Positions 16,607 through 47,098 of a stretch of DNA of 64,000 nt are shown here, piece by piece. Where the stretch lies: the NCBI GenBank assembly GCA_964057225.1, contig OZ059897.1:10788001-10852000 (forward strand), written 5' to 3'. The position numbers and the translations under genes were made by a program. The first letter of the stretch is position 1. The number at the start of each line of letters is the position of its first letter. The notes below the pieces were generated by a model. It searched no databases and was not told where the DNA came from. It worked only from the letters and a program-made list of their open reading frames with translations. The DNA comes from Auanema rhodensis (Eukaryota > Animalia > Nematoda).

Positions 16607-16678
16607 GCCCAAGTAGTATAGTGGTTAGTACTCCACGTTGTGGCCGTGGCGACACAGGTTCGATTCCTGTCTTGGGCA
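16607..16678 (+). tRNA. tRNA-His(GTG), last gene before retroelement copy 1
   Basis: Consensus tRNA body. Confidence 0.95.
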
Positions 16679-16921
16679 TTTTTTGTTTTGAAATTTAAAT
16701 GCTATAAAATTATTGCTTGCTTGTCATGTTAGATTTGTTTAATTCAAATAATTATTTAAGTTCTAACAATTTTTGATTTAATCACGTTCAATTAACTGTA
16801 TTGTTTTCAAAAATAAAGACATCTTTCAATTTCTGGTCATTGAATTAGAATTTTCATGTTGTCACACAGGAAATGAAGAATCTTAGTTGATTTCAGTAAC
16901 AATGAACACAATAATTTTGTT

Positions 16922-16926
16922 TAGTT
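16922..16926. other. Target-site duplication TAGTT (left, copy 1; right partner 26209-26213)
   Basis: Empty type-B units read TTTGTT-TAGTT-TGTAATACCG; here TAGTT occurs on both sides of the TG...CA element. Confidence 0.93.
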
Positions 16927-17222
16927 TGTCGCTTCGGCGAAGGTATTCGGTTGTGGGTATTCCGCTGAGAATTAATAGAACAGATAGTCAGTGGTAGAAT
17001 GCTTTATTAAAGAATTAACAATTCAACAAATAATAGATCGTCTATAGTCCGTTGAGCTTTGGTTGAGGTATATCGTATTTTCCGATCCCAAGGATGAAGA
17101 TATGGGAAGGCGGGCCGAAAAGTACAATCTGAAATAGACAAAGTAAAGGAAAACGATAAAAACAAAACTGAAATGGAACAAAACATAGAAAAAAGGATAA
17201 AAAATAATCGCTAACCGCGACA
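16927..17222 (-). repeat. 3' LTR of copy 1 (296 bp)
   Basis: TGTCGC...GCGACA inverted termini; direct repeat of 25913-26208 with 6 mismatches. Confidence 0.96.
17003..17008 (-). promoter_or_regulatory. Candidate poly(A) signal AATAAA in the LTR
   Basis: + strand TTTATT, ~75 nt from the LTR 3' end; same in all four LTRs. Confidence 0.6.
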
Positions 17223-17233
17223 CTGCCGCCGCA
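17223..17233 (-). other. Putative plus-strand priming tract (PPT position), GC-rich
   Basis: - strand TGCGGCGGCAG directly abuts TGT of the 3' LTR; positional call only, not a pure purine run. Confidence 0.45.
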
Positions 17234-17234
17234 G

Positions 17235-17720
17235 CTAAGCCATTGGCCTTTTGCGACGTTGTCCGTCGCATAATGACCCATGATGCTTATCAGAGTTGCA
17301 TTTGTAGCAGTTAGTGCTACAGGGATGCTCGTGTAGAGCCGATAAGCATCGTAAGCATAATTTCAATTGATGAGCGCGGATTCCACGCTCCATAACAGAT
17401 GAATAGATGGGACAATTGCCTGTGCGGTAACCATCAGTAGTCACCTGATCGCAAAATAGGCAAGTTTTCGTTGGTTGCGTTTGTAATCGAATCAAATTCT
17501 GATTTTCATTCAGAATTTTCATAGCTTCAGAAATGATTCTGAAGTGATTGTCCAAATACTCACTCATGTATTGGAACTTTCGATTTAAACGATTTTCAAC
17601 GAGAACAAGAGTTCGAATAGAGGTAGGAAGGTTAGAATAGGAAGGATCTTTCAATTCTTCCTCAAAAGATGGTTCATTATGAACTGTAATAGAATGTTCA
17701 ATGTTAAAATCTTCTATCAA
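17235..17720 (-). CDS. 3' accessory ORF: helical region plus Gag-like triple Zn knuckle
   Basis: 161 aa; CLFC...C, CLRCLSALHEHPC, CYKCNSDKHHGSLC; frame differs from env; track start is TTG, so true start is uncertain. Confidence 0.75.
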   Translation of the reverse strand: MIEDFNIEHSITVHNEPSFEEELKDPSYSNLPTSIRTLVLVENRLNRKFQYMSEYLDNHFRIISEAMKILNENQNLIRLQTQPTKTCLFCDQVTTDGYRTGNCPIYSSVMERGIRAHQLKLCLRCLSALHEHPCSTNCYKCNSDKHHGSLCDGQRRKRPMA

Positions 17721-18117: not shown

Positions 18118-18147
18118 GAATACATCTTTTGAACACTCGATCGGTAT

Positions 18148-19770
18148 TTATGTTTCTTTAGATGACATACAAGAAAACAATGCAGATGCACCCTGCCCAC
18201 AAAAATAACATCCGGAGAGACTGATCAATAAGGGACGACAAGGTATATCATAGGAAAATGTATTACTGTCATATAAAAGTTCAGAATCAATTGAAACTGT
18301 AGTTTCATCAGACTGAGTTCGAAAAGTTAAGGATGTATCGGGTTTATAGATTGTTTCCGTGTTTGCCACATACGGAGGTAAAATATGAGAAAAATGTGTG
18401 AAATTATGTTGTGGACATATACAGCCAACAACATCGTTATTGATTTTGTTACAAGTACAATCGATAACCGTTGTACATCTTGAAAAATTGTCGGAAGTGT
18501 CTGCCTTCGAAATACATTGTACCATAAATGGAAAATGTGGTTCAACAGCAAAGATTTGATTGTTTGAAGCAACAAAATAATAATTATGAAGTGGAGTAGG
18601 AGGTTTGTCTTGTGTATTGATCGTCATATTGAAAAAAGAGTAATTCATCTTCAAATATGGTGGAATTGTGATATTATAAATATTTTTATCTTTAACAATA
18701 TGTGTTGTAATTTCAAAAGTTGAAGATGTTGTCCAATCTTCACATTTAAATACTTCAAATATGTCGTCCGAAGTAGGTACATGTTCTAATTTGTAGAAAA
18801 GACAAGGGTTTTCCCAAAATGTCAAACAACGCCATATATGTGCTGAAGATCGGACACATTTGGATTGTGTTGGATAATTATATGGTTCGAATTCAGAAAT
18901 ACGAGAGCGATGATTCATAGTTTCACAAGTTTGATCACAAGATCCCATATGAGCACATCGAAAATCAACGGTTAGTTTAGGCAAAGTAGCCTTTGTAAAA
19001 AATTTTGTGGTTTTCTTACATTCAAAACTTGTATATAATTTTCGAATTTGAATATAACCAATAGAATGATTTTTAAATTTTATATCCAGGCATAAATCTT
19101 TAACTCCAGGAGAAAAAACTATTTGATCACTATATTGGTGATAACATTGAGTACGATTCAGACAATGTGTAGAAACTGAATGAATAACGTGATGATCGGT
19201 ACAAGCAGTAGCATTATTGATAAAAAATATTGTAAGTATACTGATAATTGATAATCGAGAACCTCTTTTCCAAAATAGAGGATATAATTTAGGTTCTATA
19301 TGTGGAATATTCTCAGATGAAATTGGAGGAGGTTCAATAACTCCTAATTCGATATCATTCTGTTCCGGAGTATGAGGTCTATATGTGAAAAAAGAAGATA
19401 TGTAACGAATAGTATTAGACCAGGAATTATATCGATATTGATGGAATCCTATGCGTATACAACAACAAAGGATGCCAAATAAACAACAAAGTGGTAAGAA
19501 CAATGACCACATGGCAAGATGAGGAGCACAATGTGAGTTTCCAAGCAAATGTATGGATAAAAACTTTGCCTCATCACATACTACAGAATTTGCAGATGCT
19601 ACGGGTAAAAATATCGATATTATTGTAAAAATTAAAATTGCAGACGTCATTGCTGATTTGAAATTCTTTCGCGAAGCGTATGTGATGTGATTCCGTAAAG
19701 GTAAGGTGCGAACACGGTTTGCGTTTGTTTCAGTAGATGGTTTTACGTCGTTTTGGTCAATGGTAGGCAA
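18148..19770 (-). CDS. env: Envelope: signal peptide, Gn-like stub + TM, second signal, phlebovirus Gc-like class II fusion ectodomain
   Basis: Hydrophobic segments; ATA|CTDHH Gc start; RCAHMGSC, NPCLF, LSGCYFCGQGA cysteine pattern resembles phlebovirus G2/Gc. Confidence 0.85.
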   Translation of the reverse strand: MPTIDQNDVKPSTETNANRVRTLPLRNHITYASRKNFKSAMTSAILIFTIISIFLPVASANSVVCDEAKFLSIHLLGNSHCAPHLAMWSLFLPLCCLFGILCCCIRIGFHQYRYNSWSNTIRYISSFFTYRPHTPEQNDIELGVIEPPPISSENIPHIEPKLYPLFWKRGSRLSIISILTIFFINNATACTDHHVIHSVSTHCLNRTQCYHQYSDQIVFSPGVKDLCLDIKFKNHSIGYIQIRKLYTSFECKKTTKFFTKATLPKLTVDFRCAHMGSCDQTCETMNHRSRISEFEPYNYPTQSKCVRSSAHIWRCLTFWENPCLFYKLEHVPTSDDIFEVFKCEDWTTSSTFEITTHIVKDKNIYNITIPPYLKMNYSFFNMTINTQDKPPTPLHNYYFVASNNQIFAVEPHFPFMVQCISKADTSDNFSRCTTVIDCTCNKINNDVVGCICPQHNFTHFSHILPPYVANTETIYKPDTSLTFRTQSDETTVSIDSELLYDSNTFSYDIPCRPLLISLSGCYFCGQGASALFSCMSSKET

Positions 19771-19857
19771 AATTATGGTTTGTTTTGCTTTACTTGTGTT
19801 TTTCTTTTGTAATTTTTTACGATTATCGTCAGGCGTATGATCTGGACCCCATAATTG

Positions 19858-21126
19858 TTATTCAGCTTCTTCCTCAAGGATCGGATTATGTATCGAAGAA
19901 ATTTTGGACGTAGGTATGTAAATTTTTTGAGGATTATTAATATCTATTGATTCAGGACATGTAACCACATTGTTCGTTTCATGGATTGAAGGTACAGGTG
20001 AGTTTGATCTTATAATATATTCCTGTATTGGTTGAGCATCAAGGTTCATCATATCCGAAGCAGATCCTACCTTCAAAGACAATGAAGTGTCTTCGGAAGG
20101 AGTAGATTGAGGAATTGATGTCATATCAGGTAAAACACTTCGTAATTCAAGTGGATATAGATGATTTAAGGAACGAGATATGATGTTCCCAGCTGGAGTG
20201 AGAACTTTAGCTGTACGAATGAATCCATCAGAACTACTTATAAGTTCTGTGATTCGACCAAGTTTCCATTGACCACGAGGTGAGTTATCATTATGTATAA
20301 CTACAATTTCACCAATATTAGGTTTATTGGCATTTGCTGAAGGTTGTTTTCGGGAATGTTTGTATATATCACGAATATATATCAAATATTCTGTTTGAAA
20401 TTTATCCCAAAACATCGTAGCTGCATCAGAAGTAAGTTGTAAAGTTTCTAATGCTTGTTCAACGTTTTGTATTACAGGAATATCAATGGAATTATTATAA
20501 ACTTGAGAACCACAATTATCCGGTAGGGAAAGAACAAGACCAGGCGAAATGAAATCGACAGGACGAATAGGTACGTGATTTATATTATTTAGATCTGGAT
20601 GTGTTAAAGGCCTTGTGTTAATGACTGCTTCAATTTTGACAATTAAAGTTAATAATTTATCAAATGTTAATTTATTTCGTTGTATTGCCTTTTTCATTGC
20701 ATTTTTAGTAATTCCCACCATTCTTTCCCAAGAACCTCCTTTCCATGGAGACTTAGGTGTGTTAAAGAGCCAATTTATGTTATTTTTGGCTAGATGGACT
20801 ACAATATCAGCTGGGGTGAAATTAAATTCAGCTGATTTTTGTATTGTCTCAATTAATTGAGCTCCGAGAATAAAATTACCCCCACAATCACTTCGCATTG
20901 TGGTTGGTAAACCTCGTCGGGCTATGAAACGAGTGAAAGCGTTCATAAATGAAGTCGCTGTTTGATCATAGACCATTTCAAAATGAATGGCACGTATGGT
21001 TAAGCAAGTAAAAAGACATACATAGACCTTATGTCCACTTTTAAGCATAATAGGTCCAAATAAGTCGCAACCAGTGTTAAGAAATGGTTTAGTTAATATC
21101 ACTCTATCTTTAGGCAATGAAGGCAT
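19858..21126 (-). CDS. pol: Integrase core (DDE) and C-terminal domain plus linker
   Basis: GCDLFGP (D), RSDCGGNF (D), GGSWERMV (E), INTRPL, WKLGRI...HLYPLE. Confidence 0.93.
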   Translation of the reverse strand: MPSLPKDRVILTKPFLNTGCDLFGPIMLKSGHKVYVCLFTCLTIRAIHFEMVYDQTATSFMNAFTRFIARRGLPTTMRSDCGGNFILGAQLIETIQKSAEFNFTPADIVVHLAKNNINWLFNTPKSPWKGGSWERMVGITKNAMKKAIQRNKLTFDKLLTLIVKIEAVINTRPLTHPDLNNINHVPIRPVDFISPGLVLSLPDNCGSQVYNNSIDIPVIQNVEQALETLQLTSDAATMFWDKFQTEYLIYIRDIYKHSRKQPSANANKPNIGEIVVIHNDNSPRGQWKLGRITELISSSDGFIRTAKVLTPAGNIISRSLNHLYPLELRSVLPDMTSIPQSTPSEDTSLSLKVGSASDMMNLDAQPIQEYIIRSNSPVPSIHETNNVVTCPESIDINNPQKIYIPTSKISSIHNPILEEEAE

Positions 21127-21165
21127 ATCAGGAGTGCCATATGGTAAAGATTGATATTTATTGCA

Positions 21166-24100
21166 TTAATGACATCTCTTTAAAGTTTGTTTTATAATTG
21201 CTGCAGCGCGAGCAATAAAATAAGTTTGACGAAGATGTGTGATCAAAAATTCTTTTCCTTGATGAAAAGATGCGCGATGAGCGTCCATAATTATGTGTTG
21301 AGTGAATAATGAGTTGCGAGGAAGATAAATTGGGTTTTTTGTATCATAGGATAGTAAAGAATTTTGTAATCGGCTTCTTACTCGAATTATCTCGTTATCA
21401 TAATGATAGAAATGATAACCAGGATATTGTCGTCGTAAATCATCAATAATGAGATGATCTTGAGCTTGTCGAATTAAAATAGTACGTATTATCTTCAAAT
21501 CAGTTGTTAAAACGGGATATGATGTTGATATTTGTGAAATATTCCGTAATTTATGTCCATTTTGATTTTTAAATGTTTTTAAATGCCAAATTTTTATAAT
21601 TTTAGCCAAACGGGCTAACAAACGTAAAGTTGCAAAATGACCGTTATGATAAGCTAGGTTATGTTCCAAGGGTACAGATATAGCTTGAGCTATAAGTAAT
21701 GATACAGGTGAAACATGCATCACTTGCAAGGAACCATATGGTGTTAAAGCTTGAACGGTTCTGTTAAGAATCCGCTGTGGTCCAAGAAGCCACATAGATT
21801 CCTGAAGTTGATATTTATTGGCTCCTCGTGAACCAATGTCAGCCGGATTATAATCCGTAGTAACATGGTAAAATTGAACATTAATCGAATGTTCTTCTAA
21901 TACACGGGTCATATGTTGTACATTTTGAACTTGTTTTGCTATGAAGTCAGGTAATTGCTTATTTGTTAAAATCCATGATAACGCAATGCTGCTATCACTT
22001 ACAATATTTAGTTTTTTACATGGTAATTCCATTAATATTGTGTGAGAAAGTCTCATAGCTAATCGAATAGCTAAGAGTTCCATGCGTGAAATTGTAATTG
22101 GTGTTTTAGGAGATAAGCGGCTTTTACCTGCTAGAATAGAACTCATTTTGTTGTTTGTCTGTATGTAAGCACACACAGCTAACGCTGTTGAACTAGCGTC
22201 AGCAAAGACCCATAATGTACCTTCTTCAATAGATGGTGATAGTACACGAGGTACAGTAATCTTAGCATAATTAATCTCGTTAATTATTGATGTCCAAGAG
22301 GCTGATAATTCAGAAGGTATAGTATCATCCCATTCTGTTTTAAGTGCAAAAATATCTCTAAGAATAACCTTCAAGGGTAAAATTAATGGATTTGTTATAC
22401 CAAAAGGATCATAAACTGAATGTAATTGTTGTAATGCGTTTCGTTTGGTTACTGTTGAGAGTTCCGGTATATTGAATCGAATTGAAAGGGAATCACTTAG
22501 AGCATTATAAGGTACTCCAAGAATTTTTAGTGGACAATCAGAGAGAATATCATCTTTATGAAGGTGCTGAAGAGCTTCTGACTTATTCGATGCGAATTCA
22601 CAAACATGCATCGAAATATTTTGAAATAATTGTTGTGTAAGTGAACATTTCTGTTGAGCTTCATCTATACTATCAGCAAATAATAGAATATTATCTACAT
22701 ATAATGTATTTAATAATTCATCTGATAAGTCAGTATTCAAAGAGCTTAAATACCAATTTACACTCATGTTTAGAACGCTAGGTGAGGCAGTCAATCCAAA
22801 TGGTATGCGTTTGAATCGAAAAACCTTAGTATTACTTGAGTTACAACTTCCTTGAGGATTCTTTACCCAAAAGAAACGGCAAAGATCCCGATGTTGCTTC
22901 TGTAAGCCTACTTGTGAAAAGGCTGATTGAATATCACAAGTAATAATGATTGGTTTTATTCTGGAAGCAATGAGAATGTTGAAAATATTGTTCACAAAAC
23001 TTTTTCCAGTATATAGTATGTCGTTAAGGGATAATTTACCCTTAGTTTTAGCTGAAGCATCGAAAACAACTCGTAAAGGTTTATTCGGCTTGTTTGTATT
23101 CCATACCCCATGATGTGGAATATAATGACATATAATATCAGAATTATGATTATTGTTGGAAGTTTCAAAAGGAACTTCTTCAATGATACCGTTATCGATA
23201 TAATCATCAATAATTTTACTGTACATTTCCAATTTCGAAGGATTTGCTTGTAAAGTTTTGAACAATGCCAAAAATCGATAAAAGGCTAAACCTTTATTAT
23301 CTGGTAATTGATGATAATTTGATTTCAATGGTAAAGGAGCTTCAATACGATGATTGGTTAGTGTCAACTGTTTTGAATAATCTTCGTAATAATCAATAGT
23401 TGTGTCAATTCCAGCTTCAGAAATATTAATTCCTAAGCTATCAATTTCAAATATGTATCGAAGCATATCATTATGTTGTAATGGTTTATCATTAATTGTT
23501 ATTAACGTAACAGAATGATTTTGATATGGTATTTCCCCATACAAGGTATAACCGAAACTGGTATTCTGCATTCTTAATGTAGAAGGTAACTCAAGTTCAG
23601 AATTCATATGAACGAATAACTTATAGCGATCTAATCCAATTAGAATATCTGGTTCAAATGCCTGACCATCAATCATTGGATTAGCTAAAGTTATATTGTT
23701 TCTTTTAATGAATGAACGATCATTATTGTCTAAAAGTGGAGCTCTTAATGATGTAGCTATGAATGGTTTCGTAAGCATGTTGGTTATGATGATACTGCCA
23801 TTAAAAGTATAAAAAATAGTTTTCACTTCTTTACATTCATGTGTTTCGCTGAGGCCACCTATTCCAAAGAATGTGCGATGTTGAACTTTGTTAATAGGCA
23901 ATTGAAGATCCTTAGCTCTACGTAGATCCTTAGCACTACGTATGAAAGACCGCATTGAGCCACTGTCAATCACTACCTTTACTGTGATATATTTATTTTG
24001 TGTGTAACTGAATATATGTGTCATAGCTGTTTTCAATACAATTTGACTCATCTCGATATCATGGGTATCCTCGGTATGTGTAAGCAATTGTAATTGTGTA

Positions 24101-24264
24101 TTCTTAGGTTCAGTAACTATTAATGTTACTGGTAGATGATTGAAAAATGCTGGTTGTACTGTAGGTACTGTTTGTATTACAGTTGGTGTAGAAATGATGT
24201 CATTTTTATTTTGTGAGACTGTAAGGTCTGGAGTTTGTTGTCCTGCACTTTCTGTTATGATCAT
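21166..24264 (-). CDS. pol: Aspartic protease, reverse transcriptase, RNase H, start of integrase Zn finger (frame is open from 24576)
   Basis: VIDSGS, PDILIGLD, YIPHHGV, LRVVFDAS, DIQSAF, IPFGLTASP, YVDN, FADAS, NPAD, AHRASFH. Confidence 0.95.
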   Translation of the reverse strand: MIITESAGQQTPDLTVSQNKNDIISTPTVIQTVPTVQPAFFNHLPVTLIVTEPKNTQLQLLTHTEDTHDIEMSQIVLKTAMTHIFSYTQNKYITVKVVIDSGSMRSFIRSAKDLRRAKDLQLPINKVQHRTFFGIGGLSETHECKEVKTIFYTFNGSIIITNMLTKPFIATSLRAPLLDNNDRSFIKRNNITLANPMIDGQAFEPDILIGLDRYKLFVHMNSELELPSTLRMQNTSFGYTLYGEIPYQNHSVTLITINDKPLQHNDMLRYIFEIDSLGINISEAGIDTTIDYYEDYSKQLTLTNHRIEAPLPLKSNYHQLPDNKGLAFYRFLALFKTLQANPSKLEMYSKIIDDYIDNGIIEEVPFETSNNNHNSDIICHYIPHHGVWNTNKPNKPLRVVFDASAKTKGKLSLNDILYTGKSFVNNIFNILIASRIKPIIITCDIQSAFSQVGLQKQHRDLCRFFWVKNPQGSCNSSNTKVFRFKRIPFGLTASPSVLNMSVNWYLSSLNTDLSDELLNTLYVDNILLFADSIDEAQQKCSLTQQLFQNISMHVCEFASNKSEALQHLHKDDILSDCPLKILGVPYNALSDSLSIRFNIPELSTVTKRNALQQLHSVYDPFGITNPLILPLKVILRDIFALKTEWDDTIPSELSASWTSIINEINYAKITVPRVLSPSIEEGTLWVFADASSTALAVCAYIQTNNKMSSILAGKSRLSPKTPITISRMELLAIRLAMRLSHTILMELPCKKLNIVSDSSIALSWILTNKQLPDFIAKQVQNVQHMTRVLEEHSINVQFYHVTTDYNPADIGSRGANKYQLQESMWLLGPQRILNRTVQALTPYGSLQVMHVSPVSLLIAQAISVPLEHNLAYHNGHFATLRLLARLAKIIKIWHLKTFKNQNGHKLRNISQISTSYPVLTTDLKIIRTILIRQAQDHLIIDDLRRQYPGYHFYHYDNEIIRVRSRLQNSLLSYDTKNPIYLPRNSLFTQHIIMDAHRASFHQGKEFLITHLRQTYFIARAAAIIKQTLKRCH

Positions 24265-24576: not shown

Positions 24577-25629
24577 TCAGTCATGTTCTGAATTTCGTTT
24601 TCTAGTGTCCATTAAACTGAATTCATAAATTCGTGAAGAGAGATGTTGATAAATGTCATCCATTGATTGATCTAGAGGATCTGGTTGACGATATAGTTCA
24701 CTCATTATATAATGAGGAAATTTTTCAGCGCAAATAGCAAAGAAAAATGCAGGACCAATATGACTTCCAGCGGCTGTAATTTGACGATCATAGCTTTGGA
24801 TCAAATCAAATAATTGCTTACAGCTTTTTGCATCAGAAGCAGGAGATAAATTTTTCTTTTTCCTCAATAATTGAAGTTTATCTGTAGCATATCTCATATA
24901 TGCATCTTCAAGTGCTTTTCTCAGTAAGAGATAGTTGTTTTCATTAGGTTCAATACCCCTTATAACGACCAAAGCTTTATCGGATAAGCCTTCGAGTAAA
25001 ATGTTCACTTTATCAAGTATGGAATATTGTGAATTTTGATGTATCATGTTATTAAATCTTGACCAATAGAGTTTGAAATTTTCGGGTGTACCATCGAAAG
25101 TCGGTATTTGTGTTACCGGACGTTGAATGTGATTGCTTGTTTGTAACAATTGTAATAAATTTGAATAAATTTGTGTTGTTTCGGCACCAGTGCTTTCGAT
25201 TACTTTTTCTTTCTTTTTCTCGGGAAGTAGTGATTCCACGAATGCAATTGCTGTTTTAATATGACTGATACGGTCAAGGAATAATAACCTTTGTTCGTCA
25301 GCTATATTGTAAGCTTGACGATTGTTTGGATTTTCTTCAAGTTCTTCGTATAATGCTTTCATTTCGTTTCGAAGTTCCTTATCAGAATCTTTGAAAACGG
25401 TTTGGTATTTTTCTATGTTTCTGTTCACTGTGTCGAGAGCAGTAGAGAGCTCGTTCAATACCAATTCATGATTGCGTAAAGTTGATTGCAGTAAAATAAT
25501 TCTATCGTATGTTATTTCTGAATCAGATACCCCGGCGGGTTCGTTGTCGAGAAGATTTGCGTAACGTTTGAGCAAAACGGATAAGAAGTCGTATGAACGA
25601 CGAATTTTGTCAACAAATGAGGAGGCCAT
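24577..25629 (-). CDS. gag: Gag (coiled-coil plus capsid-like region); nucleocapsid knuckles follow the in-frame TGA
   Basis: IPTFDGTPENFKLYWSRF...DKVNILLEGL...NYLLLRKALEDAY is typical BEL Gag; position downstream of PBS. Confidence 0.9.
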   Translation of the reverse strand: MASSFVDKIRRSYDFLSVLLKRYANLLDNEPAGVSDSEITYDRIILLQSTLRNHELVLNELSTALDTVNRNIEKYQTVFKDSDKELRNEMKALYEELEENPNNRQAYNIADEQRLLFLDRISHIKTAIAFVESLLPEKKKEKVIESTGAETTQIYSNLLQLLQTSNHIQRPVTQIPTFDGTPENFKLYWSRFNNMIHQNSQYSILDKVNILLEGLSDKALVVIRGIEPNENNYLLLRKALEDAYMRYATDKLQLLRKKKNLSPASDAKSCKQLFDLIQSYDRQITAAGSHIGPAFFFAICAEKFPHYIMSELYRQPDPLDQSMDDIYQHLSSRIYEFSLMDTRKRNSEHD

Positions 25630-25898: not shown

Positions 25899-25911
25899 GG
25901 TCGATGCACCA
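25899..25911 (-). promoter_or_regulatory. Primer-binding site for tRNA-Gly(GCC)
   Basis: - strand TGGTGCATCGACC, 1 nt from the 5' LTR; complements the 3' end (...GGUCGAUGCA-CCA) of invertebrate tRNA-Gly(GCC) as I recall it. Confidence 0.88.
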
Positions 25912-25912
25912 A

Positions 25913-26208
25913 TGTCGCTTCGGCGAAGGTATTCGGTTGTCGGTATTCCGCTGAGAATTAATAGAACAGATAGCCAGCGGTAGAATGCTTTATTAAAGAA
26001 TTAACAATTCAACAAAATATAGATCGTCTATAGTCCGTTGAGGTTTGGTTGAGGTATATCGTATTTTCCGATCCCAAGGATGAAGATATGGGAAGGCGGG
26101 CCGAAAAGTACAATCTGAAATAGACAAAGTAAAGGAAAACGATAAAAACAAAACTGAAATGGAACAAAACATAGAAAAAAGGATAAAAAATAATCGCTAA
26201 CCGCGACA
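25913..26208 (-). repeat. 5' LTR of copy 1 (296 bp)
   Basis: TGTCGC...GCGACA; adjacent to PBS; followed by TSD TAGTT. Confidence 0.96.
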
Positions 26209-37816: not shown

Positions 37817-38112
37817 TGTCGCTTCGGCGAAGGTATTCGGTTGTGGGTATTCCGCTGAGAATTAATAGAACAGATAGTCAGTGGTAGAATGCTTTATTAA
37901 AGAATTAACAATTCAACAAATAATAGATCGTCTATAGTCCGTTGAGCTTTGGTTGAGGTATATCGTATTTTCCGATCCCAAGGATGAAGATATGGGAAGG
38001 CGGGCCGAAAAGTACAATCTGAAATAGACAAAGTAAAGGAAAACGATAAAAACAAAACTGAAATGGAACAAAACATAGAAAAAAGGATAAAAAATAATCG
38101 CTAACCGCGACA
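37817..38112 (-). repeat. 3' LTR of copy 2
   Basis: Identical to 16927-17222 by eye. Confidence 0.96.
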
Positions 38113-38124
38113 CTGCCGCCGCAG

Positions 38125-38610
38125 CTAAGCCATTGGCCTTTTGCGACGTTGTCCGTCGCATAATGACCCATGATGCTTATCAGAGTTGCATTTGTAGCAG
38201 TTAGTGCTACAGGGATGCTCGTGTAGAGCCGATAAGCATCGTAAGCATAATTTCAATTGATGAGCGCGGATTCCACGCTCCATAACAGATGAATAGATGG
38301 GACAATTGCCTGTGCGGTAACCATCAGTAGTCACCTGATCGCAAAATAGGCAAGTTTTCGTTGGTTGCGTTTGTAATCGAATCAAATTCTGATTTTCATT
38401 CAGAATTTTCATAGCTTCAGAAATGATTCTGAAGTGATTGTCCAAATACTCACTCATGTATTGGAACTTTCGATTCAAACGATTTTCAACGAGAACAAGA
38501 GTTCGAATAGAGGTAGGAAGGTTAGAATAGGAAGGATCTTTCAATTCTTCCTCAAAAGATGGTTCATTATGAACTGTAATAGAATGTTCAATGTTAAAAT
38601 CTTCTATCAA
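38125..38610 (-). CDS. 3' accessory Zn-knuckle ORF, copy 2
   Basis: Protein identical to 17235-17720. Confidence 0.75.
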   Translation of the reverse strand: MIEDFNIEHSITVHNEPSFEEELKDPSYSNLPTSIRTLVLVENRLNRKFQYMSEYLDNHFRIISEAMKILNENQNLIRLQTQPTKTCLFCDQVTTDGYRTGNCPIYSSVMERGIRAHQLKLCLRCLSALHEHPCSTNCYKCNSDKHHGSLCDGQRRKRPMA

Positions 38611-39007
38611 AACAAAGATTTCTAAGAATAAAGAAAAACTTGGTTGTTGTATCTTTTATGATTTTTATAGTACGGAAAGCTGTGATCAAGAAAAAATAAA
38701 TGGCTGGAGTACAACCTAGGTATCCCAAAAAACATATGAGGATCAGAAAAACAACGCAGATTAAAAACATCATCCAGTGTTCTTTAAAAAGTTTCAAAAA
38801 AGGAATTATGTCAGGTATTATAACTGAATTCTGATTTGAATGAATTTCATTAGGTTCACTAGTAGATGAATTAAAATATAATTGTCCCGTTACAATTATA
38901 TCAATTTTTTCATGATTACATTTAGTATGACAAACTTCATTTATAATTGAATTATCTCTTTTAATATTGATATTTGTAATTTCATTGAAGGGTGAACATT
39001 TAATCAT
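38594..39007 (-). CDS. env: Env Gc C-terminal fragment with TM, copy 2
   Basis: As 17704-18117; separated from upstream env by TAA at 39038-39040. Confidence 0.8.
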   Translation of the reverse strand: MIKCSPFNEITNINIKRDNSIINEVCHTKCNHEKIDIIVTGQLYFNSSTSEPNEIHSNQNSVIIPDIIPFLKLFKEHWMMFLICVVFLILICFLGYLGCTPAIYFFLITAFRTIKIIKDTTTKFFFILRNLCFDRRF

Positions 39008-39037
39008 GAATACATCTTTTGAACACTCGATCGGTAT

Positions 39038-42016
39038 TTATGTTTCTTTAGATGACATACAAGAAAACAATGCAGATGCACCCTGCCCACAAAAATAACA
39101 TCCGGAGAGACTGATCAATAAGGGACGACAAGGTATATCATAGGAAAATGTATTACTGTCATATAAAAGTTCAGAATCAATTGAAACTGTAGTTTCATCA
39201 GACTGAGTTCGAAAAGTTAAGGATGTATCGGGTTTATAGATTGTTTCCGTGTTTGCCACATACGGAGGTAAAATATGAGAAAAATGTGTGAAATTATGTT
39301 GTGGACATATACAGCCAACAACATCGTTATTGATTTTGTTACAAGTACAATCGATAACCGTTGTACATCTTGAAAAATTGTCGGAAGTGTCTGCCTTCGA
39401 AATACATTGTACCATAAATGGAAAATGTGGTTCAACAGCAAAGATTTGATTGTTTGAAGCAACAAAATAATAATTATGAAGTGGAGTAGGAGGTTTGTCT
39501 TGTGTATTGATCGTCATATTGAAAAAAGAGTAATTCATCTTCAAATATGGTGGAATTGTGATATTATAAATATTTTTATCTTTAACAATATGTGTTGTAA
39601 TTTCAAAAGTTGAAGATGTTGTCCAATCTTCACATTTAAATACTTCAAATATGTCGTCCGAAGTAGGTACATGTTCTAATTTGTAGAAAAGACAAGGGTT
39701 TTCCCAAAATGTCAAACAACGCCATATATGTGCTGAAGATCGGACACATTTGGATTGTGTTGGATAATTATATGGTTCGAATTCAGAAATACGAGAGCGA
39801 TGATTCATAGTTTCACAAGTTTGATCACAAGATCCCATATGAGCACATCGAAAATCAACGGTTAGTTTAGGCAAAGTAGCCTTTGTAAAAAATTTTGTGG
39901 TTTTCTTACATTCAAAACTTGTATATAATTTTCGAATTTGAATATAACCAATAGAATGATTTTTAAATTTTATATCCAGGCATAAATCTTTAACTCCAGG
40001 AGAAAAAACTATTTGATCACTATATTGGTGATAACATTGAGTACGATTCAGACAATGTGTAGAAACTGAATGAATAACGTGATGATCGGTACAAGCAGTA
40101 GCATTATTGATAAAAAATATTGTAAGTATACTGATAATTGATAATCGAGAACCTCTTTTCCAAAATAGAGGATATAATTTAGGTTCTATATGTGGAATAT
40201 TTTCAGATGAAATTGGAGGAGGTTCAATAACTCCTAATTCGATATCATTCTGTTCCGGAGTATGAGGTCTATATGTGAAAAAAGAAGATATGTAACGAAT
40301 AGTATTAGACCAGGAATTATATCGATATTGATGGAATCCTATGCGTATACAACAACAAAGGATGCCAAATAAACAACAAAGTGGTAAGAACAATGACCAC
40401 ATGGCAAGATGAGGAGCACAATGTGGGTTTCCAAGCAAATGTATGGATAAAAACTTTGCCTCATCACATACTACAGAATTTACAGATGCTACGGGTAAAA
40501 ATATCGATATTATTGTAAAAATTAAAATTGCAGACGTCATTGCTGATTTGAAATTCTTTCGCGAAGCGTATGTGATGTGATTCCGTAAAGGTAAGGTGCG
40601 AACACGGTTTGCGTTTGTTTCAGTAGATGGTTTTACGTCGTTTTGGTCAATGGTAGGCAAAATTATGGTTTGTTTTGCTTTACTTGTGTTTTTCTTTTGT
40701 AATTTTTTACGATTATCGTCAGGCGTATGACCTGGACCCCATAATTGTAATTCAGCTTCTTCCTCAAGGATCGGATTATGTATCGAAGAAATTTTGGACG
40801 TAGGTATGTAAATTTTTTGAGGATTATTAATATCTATTGGTTCAGGACATGTAACCACATTGTTCGTTTCATGGATTGAAGGTACAGGTGAGTTTGATTT
40901 TATAATATATTCCTGTATTGGTTGAGCATCAAGGTTCATCATATCCGAAGCAGATCCTACCTTCAAAGACAATGAAGTGTCTTCGGAAGGAGTAGATTGA
41001 GGAATTGATGTCATATCAGGTAAAACACTTCGTAATTCAAGTGGATATAGATGATTTAAGGAACGAGATATGATGTTCCCAGCTGGAGTGAGAACTTTAG
41101 CTGTACGAATGAATCCATCAGAACTACTTATAAGTTCTGTGATTCGACCAAGTTTCCATTGACCACGAGGTGAGTTATCATTATGTATAACTACAATTTC
41201 ACCAATATTAGGTTTATTGGCATTTGCTGAAGGTTGTTTTCGGGAATGTTTGTATATATCACGAATATATATCAAATATTCTGTTTGAAATTTATCCCAA
41301 AACATCGTAGCTGCATCAGAAGTAAGTTGTAAAGTTTCTAATGCTTGTTCAACGTTTTGTATTACAGGAATATCAATGGAATTATTATAAACTTGAGAAC
41401 CACAATTATCCGGTAGGGAAAGAACAAGACCAGGCGAAATGAAATCGACAGGACGAATAGGTACGTGATTTATATTATTTAGATCTGGATGTGTTAAAGG
41501 CCTTGTGTTAATGACTGCTTCAATTTTGACAATTAAAGTTAATAATTTATCAAATGTTAATTTATTTCGTTGTATTGCCTTTTTCATTGCATTTTTAGTA
41601 ATTCCCACCATTCTTTCCCAAGAACCTCCTTTCCATGGAGACTTAGGTGTGTTAAAGAGCCAATTTATGTTATTTTTGGCTAGATGGACTACAATATCAG
41701 CTGGGGTGAAATTAAATTCAGCTGATTTTTGTATTGTCTCAATTAATTGAGCTCCGAGAATAAAATTACCCCCACAATCACTTCGCATTGTGGTTGGTAA
41801 ACCTCGTCGGGCTATGAAACGAGTGAAAGCGTTCATAAATGAAGTCGCTGTTTGATCATAGACCATTTCAAAATGAATGGCACGTATGGTTAAGCAAGTA
41901 AAAAGACATACATAGACCTTATGTCCACTTTTAAGCATAATAGGTCCAAATAAGTCGCAACCAGTGTTAAGAAATGGTTTAGTTAATATCACTCTATCTT
42001 TAGGCAATGAAGGCAT
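39038..42016 (-). CDS. Integrase-envelope in-frame fusion fragment, copy 2
   Basis: 992 aa; DDE integrase runs directly into signal peptide/Gn stub/Gc (TTA Leu at 40748-40750 where copy 1 has TAA). Confidence 0.92.
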   Translation of the reverse strand: MPSLPKDRVILTKPFLNTGCDLFGPIMLKSGHKVYVCLFTCLTIRAIHFEMVYDQTATSFMNAFTRFIARRGLPTTMRSDCGGNFILGAQLIETIQKSAEFNFTPADIVVHLAKNNINWLFNTPKSPWKGGSWERMVGITKNAMKKAIQRNKLTFDKLLTLIVKIEAVINTRPLTHPDLNNINHVPIRPVDFISPGLVLSLPDNCGSQVYNNSIDIPVIQNVEQALETLQLTSDAATMFWDKFQTEYLIYIRDIYKHSRKQPSANANKPNIGEIVVIHNDNSPRGQWKLGRITELISSSDGFIRTAKVLTPAGNIISRSLNHLYPLELRSVLPDMTSIPQSTPSEDTSLSLKVGSASDMMNLDAQPIQEYIIKSNSPVPSIHETNNVVTCPEPIDINNPQKIYIPTSKISSIHNPILEEEAELQLWGPGHTPDDNRKKLQKKNTSKAKQTIILPTIDQNDVKPSTETNANRVRTLPLRNHITYASRKNFKSAMTSAILIFTIISIFLPVASVNSVVCDEAKFLSIHLLGNPHCAPHLAMWSLFLPLCCLFGILCCCIRIGFHQYRYNSWSNTIRYISSFFTYRPHTPEQNDIELGVIEPPPISSENIPHIEPKLYPLFWKRGSRLSIISILTIFFINNATACTDHHVIHSVSTHCLNRTQCYHQYSDQIVFSPGVKDLCLDIKFKNHSIGYIQIRKLYTSFECKKTTKFFTKATLPKLTVDFRCAHMGSCDQTCETMNHRSRISEFEPYNYPTQSKCVRSSAHIWRCLTFWENPCLFYKLEHVPTSDDIFEVFKCEDWTTSSTFEITTHIVKDKNIYNITIPPYLKMNYSFFNMTINTQDKPPTPLHNYYFVASNNQIFAVEPHFPFMVQCISKADTSDNFSRCTTVIDCTCNKINNDVVGCICPQHNFTHFSHILPPYVANTETIYKPDTSLTFRTQSDETTVSIDSELLYDSNTFSYDIPCRPLLISLSGCYFCGQGASALFSCMSSKET

Positions 42017-42055
42017 ATCAGGAGTGCCATATGGTAAAGATTGATATTTATTGCA

Positions 42056-45000
42056 TTAATGACATCTCTTTAAAGTTTGTTTTATAATTGCTGCAGCGCG
42101 AGCAATAAAATAAGTTTGACGAAGATGTGTGATCAAAAATTCTTTTCCTTGATGAAAAGATGCGCGATGAGCGTCCATAATTATGTGTTGAGTGAATAAT
42201 GAGTTGCGAGGAAGATAAATTGGGTTTTTTGTATCATAGGATAGTAAAGAATTTTGTAATCGGCTTCTTACTCGAATTATCTCGTTATCATAATGATAGA
42301 AATGATAACCAGGATATTGTCGTCGTAAATCATCAATAATGAGATGATCTTGAGCTTGTCGAATTAAAATAGTACGTATTATCTTCAAATCAGTTGTTAA
42401 AACGGGATATGATGTTGATATTTGTGAAATATTCCGTAATTTATGTCCATTTTGATTTTTAAATGTTTTTAAATGCCAAATTTTTATAATTTTAGCCAAA
42501 CGGGCTAACAAACGTAAAGTTGCAAAATGACCGTTATGATAAGCTAGGTTATGTTCCAAGGGTACAGATATAGCTTGAGCTATAAGTAATGATACAGGTG
42601 AAACATGCATCACTTGCAAGGAACCATATGGTGTTAAAGCTTGAACGGTTCTGTTAAGAATCCGCTGTGGTCCAAGAAGCCACATAGATTCCTGAAGTTG
42701 ATATTTATTGGCTCCTCGTGAACCAATGTCAGCCGGATTATAATCCGTAGTAACATGGTAAAATTGAACATTAATCGAATGTTCTTCTAATACACGGGTC
42801 ATATGTTGTACATTTTGAACTTGTTTTGCTATGAAGTCAGGTAATTGCTTATTTGTTAAAATCCATGATAACGCAATGCTGCTATCACTTACAATATTTA
42901 GTTTTTTACATGGTAATTCCATTAATATTGTGTGAGAAAGTCTCATAGCTAATCGAATAGCTAAGAGTTCCATGCGTGAAATTGTAATTGGTGTTTTAGG
43001 AGATAAGCGGCTTTTACCTGCTAGAATAGAACTCATTTTGTTGTTTGTCTGTATGTAAGCACACACAGCTAACGCTGTTGAACTAGCGTCAGCAAAGACC
43101 CATAATGTACCTTCTTCAATAGATGGTGATAGTACACGAGGTACAGTAATCTTAGCATAATTAATCTCGTTAATTATTGATGTCCAAGAGGCTGATAATT
43201 CAGAAGGTATAGTATCATCCCATTCTGTTTTAAGTGCAAAAATATCTCTAAGAATAACCTTCAAGGGTAAAATTAATGGATTTGTTATACCAAAAGGATC
43301 ATAAACTGAATGTAATTGTTGTAATGCGTTTCGTTTGGTTACTGTTGAGAGTTCCGGTATATTGAATCGAATTGAAAGGGAATCACTTAGAGCATTATAA
43401 GGTACTCCAAGAATTTTTAGTGGACAATCAGAGAGAATATCATCTTTATGAAGGTGCTGAAGAGCTTCTGACTTATTCGATGCGAATTCACAAACATGCA
43501 TCGAAATATTTTGAAATAATTGTTGTGTAAGTGAACATTTCTGTTGAGCTTCATCTATACTATCAGCAAATAATAGAATATTATCTACATATAATGTATT
43601 TAATAATTCATCTGATAAGTCAGTATTCAAAGAGCTTAAATACCAATTTACACTCATGTTTAGAACGCTAGGTGAGGCAGTCAATCCAAATGGTATGCGT
43701 TTGAATCGAAAAACCTTAGTATTACTTGAGTTACAACTTCCTTGAGGATCCTTTACCCAAAAGAAACGGCAAAGATCCCGATGTTGCTTCTGTAAGCCTA
43801 CTTGTGAAAAGGCTGATTGAATATCACAAGTAATAATGATTGGTTTTATTCTGGAAGCAATGAGAATGTTGAAAATATTGTTCACAAAACTTTTTCCAGT
43901 ATATAGTATGTCGTTAAGGGATAATTTACCCTTAGTTTTAGCTGAAGCATCGAAAACAACTCGTAAAGGTTTATTCGGCTTGTTTGTATTCCATACCCCA
44001 TGATGTGGAATATAATGACATATAATATCAGAATTATGATTATTGTTGGAAGTTTCAAAAGGAACTTCTTCAATGATACCGTTATCGATATAATCATCAA
44101 TAATTTTACTGTACATTTCCAATTTCGAAGGATTTGCTTGTAAAGTTTTGAACAATGCCAAAAATCGATAAAAGGCTAAACCTTTATTATCTGGTAATTG
44201 ATGATAATTTGATTTCAATGGTAAAGGAGCTTCAATACGATGATTGGTTAGTGTCAACTGTTTTGAATAATCTTCGTAATAATCAATAGTTGTGTCAATT
44301 CCAGCTTCAGAAATATTAATTCCTAAGCTATCAATTTCAAATATGTATCGAAGCATATCATTATGTTGTAATGGTTTATCATTAATTGTTATTAACGTAA
44401 CAGAATGATTTTGATATGGTATTTCCCCATACAAGGTATAACCGAAACTGGTATTCTGCATTCTTAATGTAGAAGGTAACTCAAGTTCAGAATTCATATG
44501 AACGAATAACTTATAGCGATCTAATCCAATTAGAATATCTGGTTCAAATGCCTGACCATCAATCATTGGATTAGCTAAAGTTATATTGTTTCTTTTAATG
44601 AATGAACGATCATTATTGTCTAAAAGTGGAGCTCTTAATGATGTAGCTATGAATGGTTTCGTAAGCATGTTGGTTATGATGATACTGCCATTAAAAGTAT
44701 AAAAAATAGTTTTCACTTCTTTACATTCATGTGTTTCGCTGAGGCCACCTATTCCAAAGAATGTGCGATGTTGAACTTTGTTAATAGGCAATTGAAGATC
44801 CTTAGCTCTACGTAGATCCTTAGCACTACGTATGAAAGACCGCATTGAGCCACTGTCAATCACTACCTTTACTGTGATATATTTATTTTGTGTGTAACTG
44901 AATATATGTGTCATAGCTGTTTTCAATACAATTTGACTCATCTCGATATCATGGGTATCCTCGGTATGTGTAAGCAATTGTAATTGTGTATTCTTAGGTT

Positions 45001-45154
45001 CAGTAACTATTAATGTTACTGGTAGATGATTGAAAAATGCTGGTTGTACTGTAGGTACTGTTTGTGTTACAGTTGGTGTAGAAATGATGTCATTTTTATT
45101 TTGTGAGACTGTAAGGTCTGGAGTTTGTTGTCCTGCACTTTCTGTTATGATCAT
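42056..45154 (-). CDS. pol: Protease-RT-RNase H, copy 2
   Basis: Same motifs as 21166-24264. Confidence 0.95.
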   Translation of the reverse strand: MIITESAGQQTPDLTVSQNKNDIISTPTVTQTVPTVQPAFFNHLPVTLIVTEPKNTQLQLLTHTEDTHDIEMSQIVLKTAMTHIFSYTQNKYITVKVVIDSGSMRSFIRSAKDLRRAKDLQLPINKVQHRTFFGIGGLSETHECKEVKTIFYTFNGSIIITNMLTKPFIATSLRAPLLDNNDRSFIKRNNITLANPMIDGQAFEPDILIGLDRYKLFVHMNSELELPSTLRMQNTSFGYTLYGEIPYQNHSVTLITINDKPLQHNDMLRYIFEIDSLGINISEAGIDTTIDYYEDYSKQLTLTNHRIEAPLPLKSNYHQLPDNKGLAFYRFLALFKTLQANPSKLEMYSKIIDDYIDNGIIEEVPFETSNNNHNSDIICHYIPHHGVWNTNKPNKPLRVVFDASAKTKGKLSLNDILYTGKSFVNNIFNILIASRIKPIIITCDIQSAFSQVGLQKQHRDLCRFFWVKDPQGSCNSSNTKVFRFKRIPFGLTASPSVLNMSVNWYLSSLNTDLSDELLNTLYVDNILLFADSIDEAQQKCSLTQQLFQNISMHVCEFASNKSEALQHLHKDDILSDCPLKILGVPYNALSDSLSIRFNIPELSTVTKRNALQQLHSVYDPFGITNPLILPLKVILRDIFALKTEWDDTIPSELSASWTSIINEINYAKITVPRVLSPSIEEGTLWVFADASSTALAVCAYIQTNNKMSSILAGKSRLSPKTPITISRMELLAIRLAMRLSHTILMELPCKKLNIVSDSSIALSWILTNKQLPDFIAKQVQNVQHMTRVLEEHSINVQFYHVTTDYNPADIGSRGANKYQLQESMWLLGPQRILNRTVQALTPYGSLQVMHVSPVSLLIAQAISVPLEHNLAYHNGHFATLRLLARLAKIIKIWHLKTFKNQNGHKLRNISQISTSYPVLTTDLKIIRTILIRQAQDHLIIDDLRRQYPGYHFYHYDNEIIRVRSRLQNSLLSYDTKNPIYLPRNSLFTQHIIMDAHRASFHQGKEFLITHLRQTYFIARAAAIIKQTLKRCH

Positions 45155-45466
45155 GCTTGTGGACGATATAGGTTTTACAGGACTCTTTGTTTCACGATCT
45201 AAATTTAGACATAAGCAACTGTTGTGTTCATTTTTGCATTTCGGGCATTTCGGTCGAGAACAATCACGACTGCGATGTGAAGTAGAGAAACAAAGCCAGC
45301 ATACTTCTTTGTTCTTTAAGATTTCACGTTTTTTCTGTGGTGTGTCATAAGTACGGCAATAATAAGATGGATGTCCTTCTTTACCACAAAAAACACAAGT
45401 CCAAATCTTTTTAGTGGATTTGTCGAAAGTTTTATCAACATGTTTTCCACGATTTGGTGAATTATG

Positions 45467-46519
45467 TCAGTCATGTTCTGAATTTCGTTTTCTAGTGTCC
45501 ATTAAACTGAATTCATAAATTCGTGAAGAGAGATGTTGATAAATGTCATCCATTGATTGATCTAGAGGATCTGGTTGACGATATAGTTCACTCATTATAT
45601 AATGAGGAAATTTTTCAGCGCAAATAGCAAAGAAAAATGCAGGACCAATATGACTTCCAGCGGCTGTAATTTGACGATCATAGCTTTGGATCAAATCAAA
45701 TAATTGCTTACAGCTTTTTGCATCAGAAGCAGGAGATAAATTTTTCTTTTTCCTCAATAATTGAAGTTTATCTGTAGCATATCTCATATATGCATCTTCA
45801 AGTGCTTTTCTCAGTAAGAGATAGTTGTTTTCATTAGGTTCAATACCCCTTATAACGACCAAAGCTTTATCGGATAAGCCTTCGAGTAAAATGTTCACTT
45901 TATCAAGTATGGAATATTGTGAATTTTGATGTATCATGTTATTAAATCTTGACCAATAGAGTTTGAAATTTTCGGGTGTACCATCGAAAGTCGGTATTTG
46001 TGTTACCGGACGTTGAATGTGATTGCTTGTTTGTAACAATTGTAATAAATTTGAATAAATTTGTGTTGTTTCGGCACCAGTGCTTTCGATTACTTTTTCT
46101 TTCTTTTTCTCGGGAAGTAGTGATTCCACGAATGCAATTGCTGTTTTAATATGACTGATACGGTCAAGGAATAATAACCTTTGTTCGTCAGCTATATTGT
46201 AAGCTTGACGATTGTTTGGATTTTCTTCAAGTTCTTCGTATAATGCTTTCATTTCGTTTCGAAGTTCCTTATCAGAATCTTTGAAAACGGTTTGGTATTT
46301 TTCTATGTTTCTGTTCACTGTGTCGAGAGCAGTAGAGAGCTCGTTCAATACCAATTCATGATTGCGTAAAGTTGATTGCAGTAAAATAATTCTATCGTAT
46401 GTTATTTCTGAATCAGATACCCCGGCGGGTTCGTTGTCGAGAAGATTTGCGTAACGTTTGAGCAAAACGGATAAGAAGTCGTATGAACGACGAATTTTGT
46501 CAACAAATGAGGAGGCCAT
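45467..46519 (-). CDS. gag: Gag, copy 2
   Basis: Protein identical to 24577-25629. Confidence 0.9.
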   Translation of the reverse strand: MASSFVDKIRRSYDFLSVLLKRYANLLDNEPAGVSDSEITYDRIILLQSTLRNHELVLNELSTALDTVNRNIEKYQTVFKDSDKELRNEMKALYEELEENPNNRQAYNIADEQRLLFLDRISHIKTAIAFVESLLPEKKKEKVIESTGAETTQIYSNLLQLLQTSNHIQRPVTQIPTFDGTPENFKLYWSRFNNMIHQNSQYSILDKVNILLEGLSDKALVVIRGIEPNENNYLLLRKALEDAYMRYATDKLQLLRKKKNLSPASDAKSCKQLFDLIQSYDRQITAAGSHIGPAFFFAICAEKFPHYIMSELYRQPDPLDQSMDDIYQHLSSRIYEFSLMDTRKRNSEHD

Positions 46520-46788
46520 TTCTAACGCTGTGTGAGGCGTAATAGGTAAGCTTCTATAGCTGATAATGATAAATAAAATTCAGAAAATGAAAGTGAACAA
46601 GAAATGAAAGTTGTACAAAGTACAACAAATGAGTATGAGATATACGACTTGTCGTATCTTGGAGCGTTATTATGCTCCGAAATTATATCGATTACTGCAG
46701 GCAAATTCACGCCTGAGCTGATGGACTTAAGAGTCGCCACCAAATCAAATGATAAAGTACCTGTTGAAGCAGTGACCTGAGTCGTGAT

Positions 46789-46801
46789 GGTCGATGCACC
46801 A
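46789..46801 (-). promoter_or_regulatory. PBS for tRNA-Gly(GCC), copy 2
   Basis: + strand GGTCGATGCACCA. Confidence 0.88.
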
Positions 46802-46802
46802 A

Positions 46803-47098
46803 TGTCGCTTCGGCGAAGGTATTCGGTTGTCGGTATTCCGCTGAGAATTAATAGAACAGATAGCCAGCGGTAGAATGCTTTATTAAAGAATTAACAATTC
46901 AACAAAATATAGATCGTCTATAGTCCGTTGAGGTTTGGTTGAGGTATATCGTATTTTCCGATCCCAAGGATGAAGATATGGGAAGGCGGGCCGAAAAGTA
47001 CAATCTGAAATAGACAAAGTAAAGGAAAACGATAAAAACAAAACTGAAATGGAACAAAACATAGAAAAAAGGATAAAAAATAATCGCTAACCGCGACA
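46803..47098 (-). repeat. 5' LTR of copy 2
   Basis: Identical to 25913-26208 by eye. Confidence 0.96.

Follow-up and report, generated by a model that had tools for sequence, protein, structure and literature searches.

The combination of a short primer-binding site (PBS) with extra contacts to the primer tRNA is a principle so far established in the yeast elements Ty1 and Ty3 and in retroviruses. The PBS measures 8 nt in Ty3 and 10 nt in Ty1, and the boxes of Ty1 are short and lie just downstream of the PBS. The A-rich loop and the primer activation signal of HIV-1 (human immunodeficiency virus type 1), as well as the contact between U5 (the unique 5' region) and the tRNA T arm in Rous sarcoma virus (RSV), lie upstream of the PBS. 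Contacts with the D arm of the primer have been described in Ty1 and Ty3, and extra primer contacts in HIV-1, in feline immunodeficiency virus (FIV) and in RSV (PMC5371799). In vivo, initiation in Ty1 requires template boxes that pair with the T and D regions of its primer (Friant et al. 1996 and 1998, in the passage of PMC5371799 that cites them). For the Belpaoviridae (Semotivirus), the profile of the International Committee on Taxonomy of Viruses (ICTV) gives long terminal repeats (LTRs) of 0.2-1.2 kb, gag-pol and an optional env, priming by tRNA-Gly or tRNA-Arg and a single 18-nt PBS; it describes replication as poorly understood and leaves a second tRNA contact unmentioned (PMC8742986). 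A survey of BEL/Pao elements in metazoans mentions neither tRNA nor PBS (PMC3118150), and no description of a second tRNA contact in the Belpaoviridae was found in the open-access literature. Here we analysed a 64-kb stretch of the nematode Auanema rhodensis (GCA_964057225.1, contig OZ059897.1, positions 10,788,001 to 10,852,000, forward strand; hereafter the window), which holds a BEL/Pao element whose LTR carries a 16-nt box exactly complementary to the D-arm region of the host tRNA-Gly(GCC), the tRNA that the PBS of the element also appears to select.

The exact 16-mer TCAGTGGTAGAATGCT, read on the plus strand, was found in the 3' LTRs of both element copies in the window, and a form with two mismatches, CCAGCGGTAGAATGCT, in both 5' LTRs, at precisely the sites given by an earlier reading of the DNA from its letters alone (the sequence-only reading; Table 1). 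Four box matches were thus observed in the window, versus 0.05 expected from shuffles. The second pair of sites is present as claimed but is not independent, being part of a 20,890-bp segmental duplicate. The D arm of tRNA-Gly(GCC), as given by that reading, was identical over the box in the host genes; these occur by the hundreds in arrays and read gcatcggtggtTCAGTGGTAGAATGCTcgcc... The box matches them at 16 of 16 positions, nt 12-27 in linear count, with sharp edges on both sides. The matched part of the tRNA comprises the second half of the 5' strand of the D-stem, the D-loop, the 3' strand of the D-stem and the first bases of the anticodon stem. When the genome was searched with the 16-mer, 653 copies were obtained, most of them inside tRNA-Gly(GCC) genes reading gcatcggtggtTCAGTGGTAGAATGCTcgcctgccacgcgggcgacccgggttcgattcccggccgatgca. 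As a statistic we used the longest exact antisense match of the 5' LTR plus leader to nt 1-60 of tRNA-Gly, and 0 of 2000 shuffles attained the 16 nt seen here.

The box had also been described as fused to the poly(A) signal, and the two do overlap by one base, the final A of AATAAA being the first base of the box. This is the only AATAAA of the LTR, and the position of the box right after it argues for the box being transcribed. The distance from the end of the box to the end of the LTR is 61 nt, and in the 5' copy the box stands 62 nt from the PBS. The five bases that follow the box in the RNA, CUAUC, may lengthen the pairing (Table 1). With CUAUC included, duplexfold predicted -33.7 kcal/mol for the pairing with the tRNA, and -32.7 kcal/mol for the 5' LTR variant. 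One LTR subfamily reads UUAUU in place of CUAUC, where G-U pairing with G would still be possible. The evidence for this putative extension is weak.

The PBS lies one base past the 5' LTR and its sequence was unchanged in every 5' LTR copy of the genome. The earlier claim that its 13 nt fit the same tRNA-Gly was right about the tRNA and too generous about the fit. The PBS pairs with the tRNA-Gly 3' end plus CCA over 10 contiguous nt, which are followed by an A:C mismatch and two more pairs (12/13). The genome was found to have no tRNA gene ending in ...TCGATGCA, which would fit better, so that the PBS is short. Compared with the usual 18 nt, it comprises 10 contiguous nt here and 12 nt in each of the two Gly-primed relatives described below. 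Judged by this pairing, the element is predicted to be primed by tRNA-Gly, the same tRNA that the box matches. Pattern searches for a complement of the tRNA 5' end in U5, beside the PBS, found nothing.

Several observations on tRNA-Gly itself were made in the same searches. A perfect 16-nt Gly PBS had 11 exact matches in the genome, of which at least one is a confirmed tRNA-Gly-CCA retro-copy, and a similar retro-copy (L001, G000:C3:4028397-4028470) matched it with one mismatch. Retro-copies of tRNA-Gly(GCC), for example that at G000:C6:14146044-14146117, have an encoded CCA and A-rich tails, and some are in tandem. The very large tRNA-Gly gene arrays of the host are on C6 and C4.

To compare the element with its relatives, the genomic surroundings of 12 of them were inspected. 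The nearest relatives in Pol were only 35-41% identical, and two relatives were Gly-primed. One is an element of the hookworm Ancylostoma duodenale (L068, 39% Pol identity). It has the box TACCACTGAACCAC in both LTRs, at 9667-9680, antisense to tRNA nt 7-20 over 14 nt, a length attained by 0 of 2000 shuffles; read by eye, 19 of the 20 positions from nt 7 to nt 26 match. A distance of 74 nt separates this box from the end of its LTR; GATAAA stands 7 nt upstream of the box, and the box is followed by a U-rich run. The other relative is a 10.3-kb Logan contig (L075, 35% identity) with a fused gag-pol-env open reading frame (ORF) that includes Phlebovirus_G2. Its 12-nt PBS is at 585-596 and its box, CACTGAACCACC, at 897-908, antisense to tRNA nt 6-17 over 12 nt, a length attained by 6 of 2000 shuffles. 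In the six elements with a non-Gly or unclear primer (L069, L070, L072, L073, L074 and L083), the antisense matches measured 5-8 nt, which is chance level, and the sense-strand matches to tRNA-Gly measured 6-9 nt in all elements. The sequence-only reading had named the absence of the box from Gly-primed relatives as grounds for giving it up; the opposite was seen, since both of these relatives carry a match. It had also proposed a survey for boxes that follow the identity of the primer; the antisense box was present in 3 of 3 Gly-primed elements versus 0 of 6 others, a small sample (Fisher ~0.012).

The three Gly-primed elements were then compared with one another. When the LTR plus leader of the hookworm element was aligned with that of each other Gly-primed element, the top match was the PBS and the next one was the core of the box. 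Apart from these two, no similarity was found among the three LTRs and leaders; the identity of Gag-Pol between the hookworm and Logan elements was 33%. The registers of the three boxes on the tRNA differ, namely nt 12-27, 7-20 and 6-17. Since the registers differ, the feature that was kept appears to be complementarity to the 5' third of the tRNA and not one fixed motif, as would be the signature of an RNA-RNA contact. Such a signature is evidence against the box being a protein-binding site, an element of poly(A) context or a neutral relic.

Some candidates and scans did not contribute to this comparison. L071 has no LTR pair, and neither L076 nor L077 has a recognisable Gly PBS, these contigs being incomplete or circularly collapsed. 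When metagenomes were scanned with the shared junction ACATTTTTGGTGCATCGGC, five chance-like matches were obtained, none of them BEL/Pao, and a scan of viral contigs with the Pol alignment gave no matches. When the 5' half of the tRNA was paired with the LTR plus leader in duplexfold, the best energy did not separate the Gly-primed elements from the others or from shuffles, this element excepted; the energy scan was dropped as a statistic and exact matches were used instead. As for the gene content of these relatives, the Logan contigs L075 (948-9269) and L077 (185-8605) encode gag, pol and a Phlebovirus_G2 env in one ORF of 2,773-2,806 aa, and L076 has a Monjiviricetes-type fusion protein instead of Phlebovirus_G2. 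The non-Gly-primed BEL/Pao relative L083 (GCA_030710605.1; loci 9635-22265 and 1353-2553) forms a head-to-tail array that shares LTRs, with a period of 4,113 bp, ~7 kb from three tRNA-Gly(GCC) genes.

We consider it probable, at roughly 0.6, that the box is a second, element-encoded contact for the primer tRNA-Gly(GCC), by which the short PBS would be compensated. The box is exactly complementary to that tRNA, it stands in the LTR by the poly(A) signal, and it recurs in the Gly-primed relatives alone; from this we infer that the two RNAs pair here in particles and that this pairing aids initiation. In the proposed mechanism, a short PBS of 10-12 nt in the genomic RNA would pair with the 3' end of the tRNA, and the box would pair with the D arm and 5' third of the tRNA, over 16 nt here and possibly 21 pairs with CUAUC. 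The second duplex would open the core formed by the D-loop and T-loop, and it would make primer selection and the initiation complex more stable and more specific, offsetting the shortness of the PBS.

The later steps of this proposal are less certain. If the poly(A) cleavage occurs 10-30 nt past AAUAAA, the box would be the last stretch of R (the terminally repeated region) and would be present at both RNA ends. The tRNA attached to the strong-stop DNA might then re-pair with the 3' copy of the box and guide the first-strand transfer, as in Ty3. Placement in R and bridging of the 5' and 3' ends may apply to this family and to the hookworm element, since the box of each is preceded by a hexamer of the poly(A) type and followed by a U-rich stretch. 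However, the box of the Logan element is only in the leader, at a single site per RNA, and a function common to all three elements therefore cannot depend on bridging. A wider version would have the whole env-bearing, Gly-primed clade of Belpaoviridae hold its primer at two sites. Here the closing bases of R, directly ahead of the poly(A) tail, would form the second site; once RNase H had removed the 5' copy, the D arm of the tRNA bearing the strong-stop DNA would re-pair with the 3' copy and pass the nascent DNA to the acceptor end, so that a tRNA-guided first-strand transfer would have arisen independently of Ty3. We put this version forward tentatively and think it rather unlikely to hold in full.

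Several points weigh against a second primer contact. The box of the Logan element is in the leader and not in the LTR, ~300 nt past the PBS and 40 nt before the AUG of the ORF (gag). The comparison is small (3 versus 6), and the three Gly-primed elements are mutually closest relatives, so that the trait may have arisen once. The hookworm box was scored against the tRNA-Gly of A. rhodensis, the hookworm tRNA-Gly being assumed equal; the 5' half of tRNA-Gly was identical in the animal carrying L083, the sole other animal whose tRNA-Gly genes were read. For the non-Gly elements, the patterns built from the PBS matched no host tRNA gene. The dihydrouridines of the D-loop and the tertiary fold of the tRNA would oppose such pairing unless a chaperone acts. 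Three small RNA runs labelled with the same species yielded three short contigs, in env, ORF5 and the integrase, and none on the LTR; no RNA run on record contains the element.

The variation within the genome is to be placed with these points. We aligned 34 distinct LTR copies that were 85-100% identical, and the changes were counted by parsimony on the tree. The box was exact in 29 of the 34 copies, with 6 changes in its 16 columns versus 0.49 per column LTR-wide, and 43% of the 16-nt windows of the LTR had as few changes as the box or fewer. In a young family such as this, where most changes postdate insertion, conservation within the genome is uninformative; it neither supports nor refutes a function. 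AATAAA was kept in all aligned copies except one, which reads AATGAA. The two A-to-G changes of the 5' LTR box, which had been offered as pairing-preserving, do keep G-U pairing. However, they are private to the copies in the tRNA-His array described below, one of which carries just the first of the two, and nearly all other copies are canonical. The changes are post-insertion mutations that say nothing on selection. An identical G-to-A change of the box was present in both LTRs of one element (L044, L045), and the 14-nt version of the box was therefore probably already present when this element inserted.

Among the alternatives, one assigns the box a different partner, namely a 5' fragment or half of tRNA-Gly(GCC) (nt 1 to ~33), through which the host would control the element or which the element would exploit, for example for poly(A)-site use or translation. 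All three registers fall within the 5' half, and 5' tRF-Gly-GCC is reported to regulate LTR-linked transcripts in mouse (PMC6938667). The places of the box, adjoining AATAAA here and just before the gag AUG in the Logan element, would suit such uses. Nevertheless, a site of pure host repression should be lost, yet the box is kept in three lineages with unalignable LTRs, and its occurrence only alongside a Gly PBS points to the primer. Furthermore, the matches omit tRNA nt 2-5 in all three elements, and the Argonaute seed (nt 2-8) is therefore never fully covered. We regard a tRNA fragment as an unlikely partner.

It is quite unlikely, in our judgement, that the box is a functionless relic, that is, a piece of tRNA-Gly captured once by aberrant reverse transcription or recombination and not yet eroded. 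The tRNA-Gly-CCA retro-copies in the genome indicate that tRNA-Gly does get reverse transcribed, and the conservation of the box within the genome, being not above the LTR background, would be expected of a relic. If the primer had been read through, however, the scheme of reverse transcription would put the antisense D arm just downstream of the PBS and not 62-82 nt upstream of it. Perfect runs of 12-16 nt persist while the other non-coding bases are unalignable at 33-39% Pol identity, and the registers vary among the elements.

A third possibility is a DNA-level site, resembling the A-box of RNA polymerase III (Pol III) on the strand opposite the element and tied to insertion near tRNA genes. 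At least six kinds of tRNA gene have the family inserted 11-75 bp upstream, and the hookworm and Logan matches span most of the A-box region (nt 8-19); the match of this element covers only nt 12-19 of it. The sequence-only reading had considered a captured A-box oriented like the genes of the array, which is contradicted by independent insertions lying in both orientations relative to the tRNA gene. Moreover, no convincing B-box was seen in the LTR, ARAGORN called no tRNA-like gene there, and around the hookworm element, which carries the box, the 10 kb on each side contain no tRNA gene. A Pol III site is thus very improbable. Equally improbable is that the box belongs to the poly(A)-site context (the cleavage region from AAUAAA to a U-rich element) with an incidental complementarity to tRNA-Gly, since, although a hexamer, the box and a U-rich stretch follow one another in this order here and in the hookworm element, a 16/16 match to the primer tRNA has an estimated chance of ~1e-5 per 296-nt LTR (0/2000 shuffles) and the box of the Logan element lies in the leader, away from any LTR poly(A) site.

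The element stands among 135 tRNA-His(GTG) genes repeated in tandem with a period of 332 bp. This array is broken at two places of the window by one and the same 9,282-bp insert. Copy 1 of this 9.3-kb element occupies 16927-26208 on the minus strand, and its two LTRs, 296 bp each, are 98% identical with 6 differences between them. The features are listed in Table 1. Copy 2 is offset from copy 1 by 20,890 bp, with 10 differences in 9,282 bp; it arose not by a second insertion but by segmental duplication of a 20,890-bp unit that comprises array and element. More element copies were seen in the same array past the window end (C5:10873554, 10879706, 10896470 and 10904670).

Table 1. Coordinates of the element and its features; positions are those of the window, except in the last row, which gives those of the hookworm locus L068.
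Feature	Position	Strand	Remarks
3' LTR, copy 1	16927..17222	-	TGTCGC...GCGACA ends; direct repeat of 25913-26208
5' LTR, copy 1	25913..26208	-	direct repeat of 16927-17222
Target-site duplication (TSD) TAGTT, 5 bp	left 16922..16926, right 26209-26213	.	flanks copy 1
Anti-D-arm box	16988..17003	-	RNA sense AGCAUUCUACCACUGA; LTR nt 220-235; complements tRNA-Gly(GCC) nt 12-27
5' LTR box, two A-to-G changes	25974..25989	-	RNA sense AGCAUUCUACCGCUGG; both changed positions G-U pairable
AATAAA	17003..17008 (TTTATT in the window)	-	sole canonical poly(A) signal of the LTR
CUAUC, 3' of the box	16983..16987	-	could pair with tRNA nt 6-10 (two G-U, bulged U11), 21 pairs in total
PBS TGGTGCATCGACC	25899..25911	-	one base past the 5' LTR
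gag ORF	24577..25629	-	DUF1759, E 2e-9 (Pfam)
pol ORF	21166..24264	-	RVT_1, 1e-12, and Peptidase_A17 (Pao retrotransposon peptidase), 8e-36 (Pfam)
Integrase C-terminal ORF	19858..21126	-	DUF5641, E 4e-15 (Pfam)
env-like ORF	18148..19770	-	Phlebovirus_G2 (Gc) fusion domain, E 7.6e-45 (Pfam)
Element copy 2	37817..47098	-	box 37878-37893, box variant 46864-46879, PBS 46789-46801
Hookworm element LTRs (L068)	9530-9754 and 22370-22594		PBS TGGTGCATCGGC at 9758-9769, 12 nt

The identity of the element as BEL/Pao, proposed from the letters alone, was borne out by the Pfam matches to RVT_1, Peptidase_A17, DUF1759 and DUF5641. With the hallmarks of gag, a Pao-type peptidase, reverse transcriptase and integrase all present, it is assigned by its predicted proteins to BEL/Pao (Belpaoviridae). 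The traits of Belpaoviridae LTRs were also seen, namely TGT...ACA ends, the TSD TAGTT and a tRNA-Gly PBS beside the 5' LTR. No homologue of gag was detectable in the protein collection. The interval from env to the 3' LTR holds a 161-aa ORF (17235-17720, minus strand) without a Pfam match. In RNA run X2, a 163-nt contig skips 194 nt inside env (window 18600-18795), with GT..AG ends on the plus strand. It is a single contig with a depth of 2.9, antisense to the element, and may represent a deleted copy or an antisense splice.

The insertion sites of the family were inspected at the loci L040, L047, L050-L052, L055, L058, L061 and L063. In the window, a tRNA-His gene starts 15 nt from the LTR edge, the insertion being 11-15 bp upstream of the gene (window 26209-26290). 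At the other loci, the LTR edge was 64 nt from tRNA-Ser(GCT), 54 nt from tRNA-Gln(CTG), 74 nt from tRNA-Ala(TGC), and 24 and 64-73 nt from tRNA-Asp(GTC) at several sites. The insertions upstream of tRNA genes were found in both orientations. Other copies of the family were nested in copies of the same family or had no tRNA gene within 1.5 kb. Targeting of tRNA genes by an animal BEL/Pao element looks unusual. The tRNA-His gene beside the 5' LTR (26224-26289) has lost six bases (ggcgac) where the anticodon stem meets the variable loop, and ARAGORN made no call there.

If the box is indeed a second contact for the primer, the principle of a short PBS with extra tRNA contacts would extend to a third big group of LTR elements, in animals. 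For annotation, it would follow that a short or imperfect PBS need not signal a dead element. The box and the tRNA form a concrete pair of sequences for testing in vitro, and the pattern, linked to a Gly PBS and shifting in register, can be tested in repeat libraries.

Compared with the known systems, the arrangement is most readily set beside that of Ty3 (Metaviridae), which likewise has a short 5' PBS and a second, LTR-derived segment pairing with other arms of the primer, including the D arm (PMC5371799). However, Ty3 uses the initiator tRNA (tRNAiMet), and its second segment is in U3 (the unique 3' region) at the 3' end only, ~4.8 kb away, and also pairs with the T arm. Here the tRNA is tRNA-Gly and the predicted contact runs from the D arm into the start of the anticodon stem; the box stands by the poly(A) signal, probably in R or at the border of R and U5, and bridging is only proposed. 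Ty1 (Pseudoviridae) similarly combines a short PBS with nearby boxes (0, 1 and 2.1) for tRNAiMet, and the Logan element shares its layout with the box downstream, whereas the element described here has a single long box of 16 nt upstream of the PBS, within the LTR. In HIV-1, FIV and RSV, the PBS is 18 nt and the extra contacts are 4-8 nt to the anticodon or T arm; here, in contrast, a short PBS goes with an extra contact that exceeds it in length. The element resembles the Belpaoviridae of the ICTV profile in LTR size, in gag-pol-env and in priming by tRNA-Gly, and differs from them in a PBS that pairs over 10 contiguous nt.
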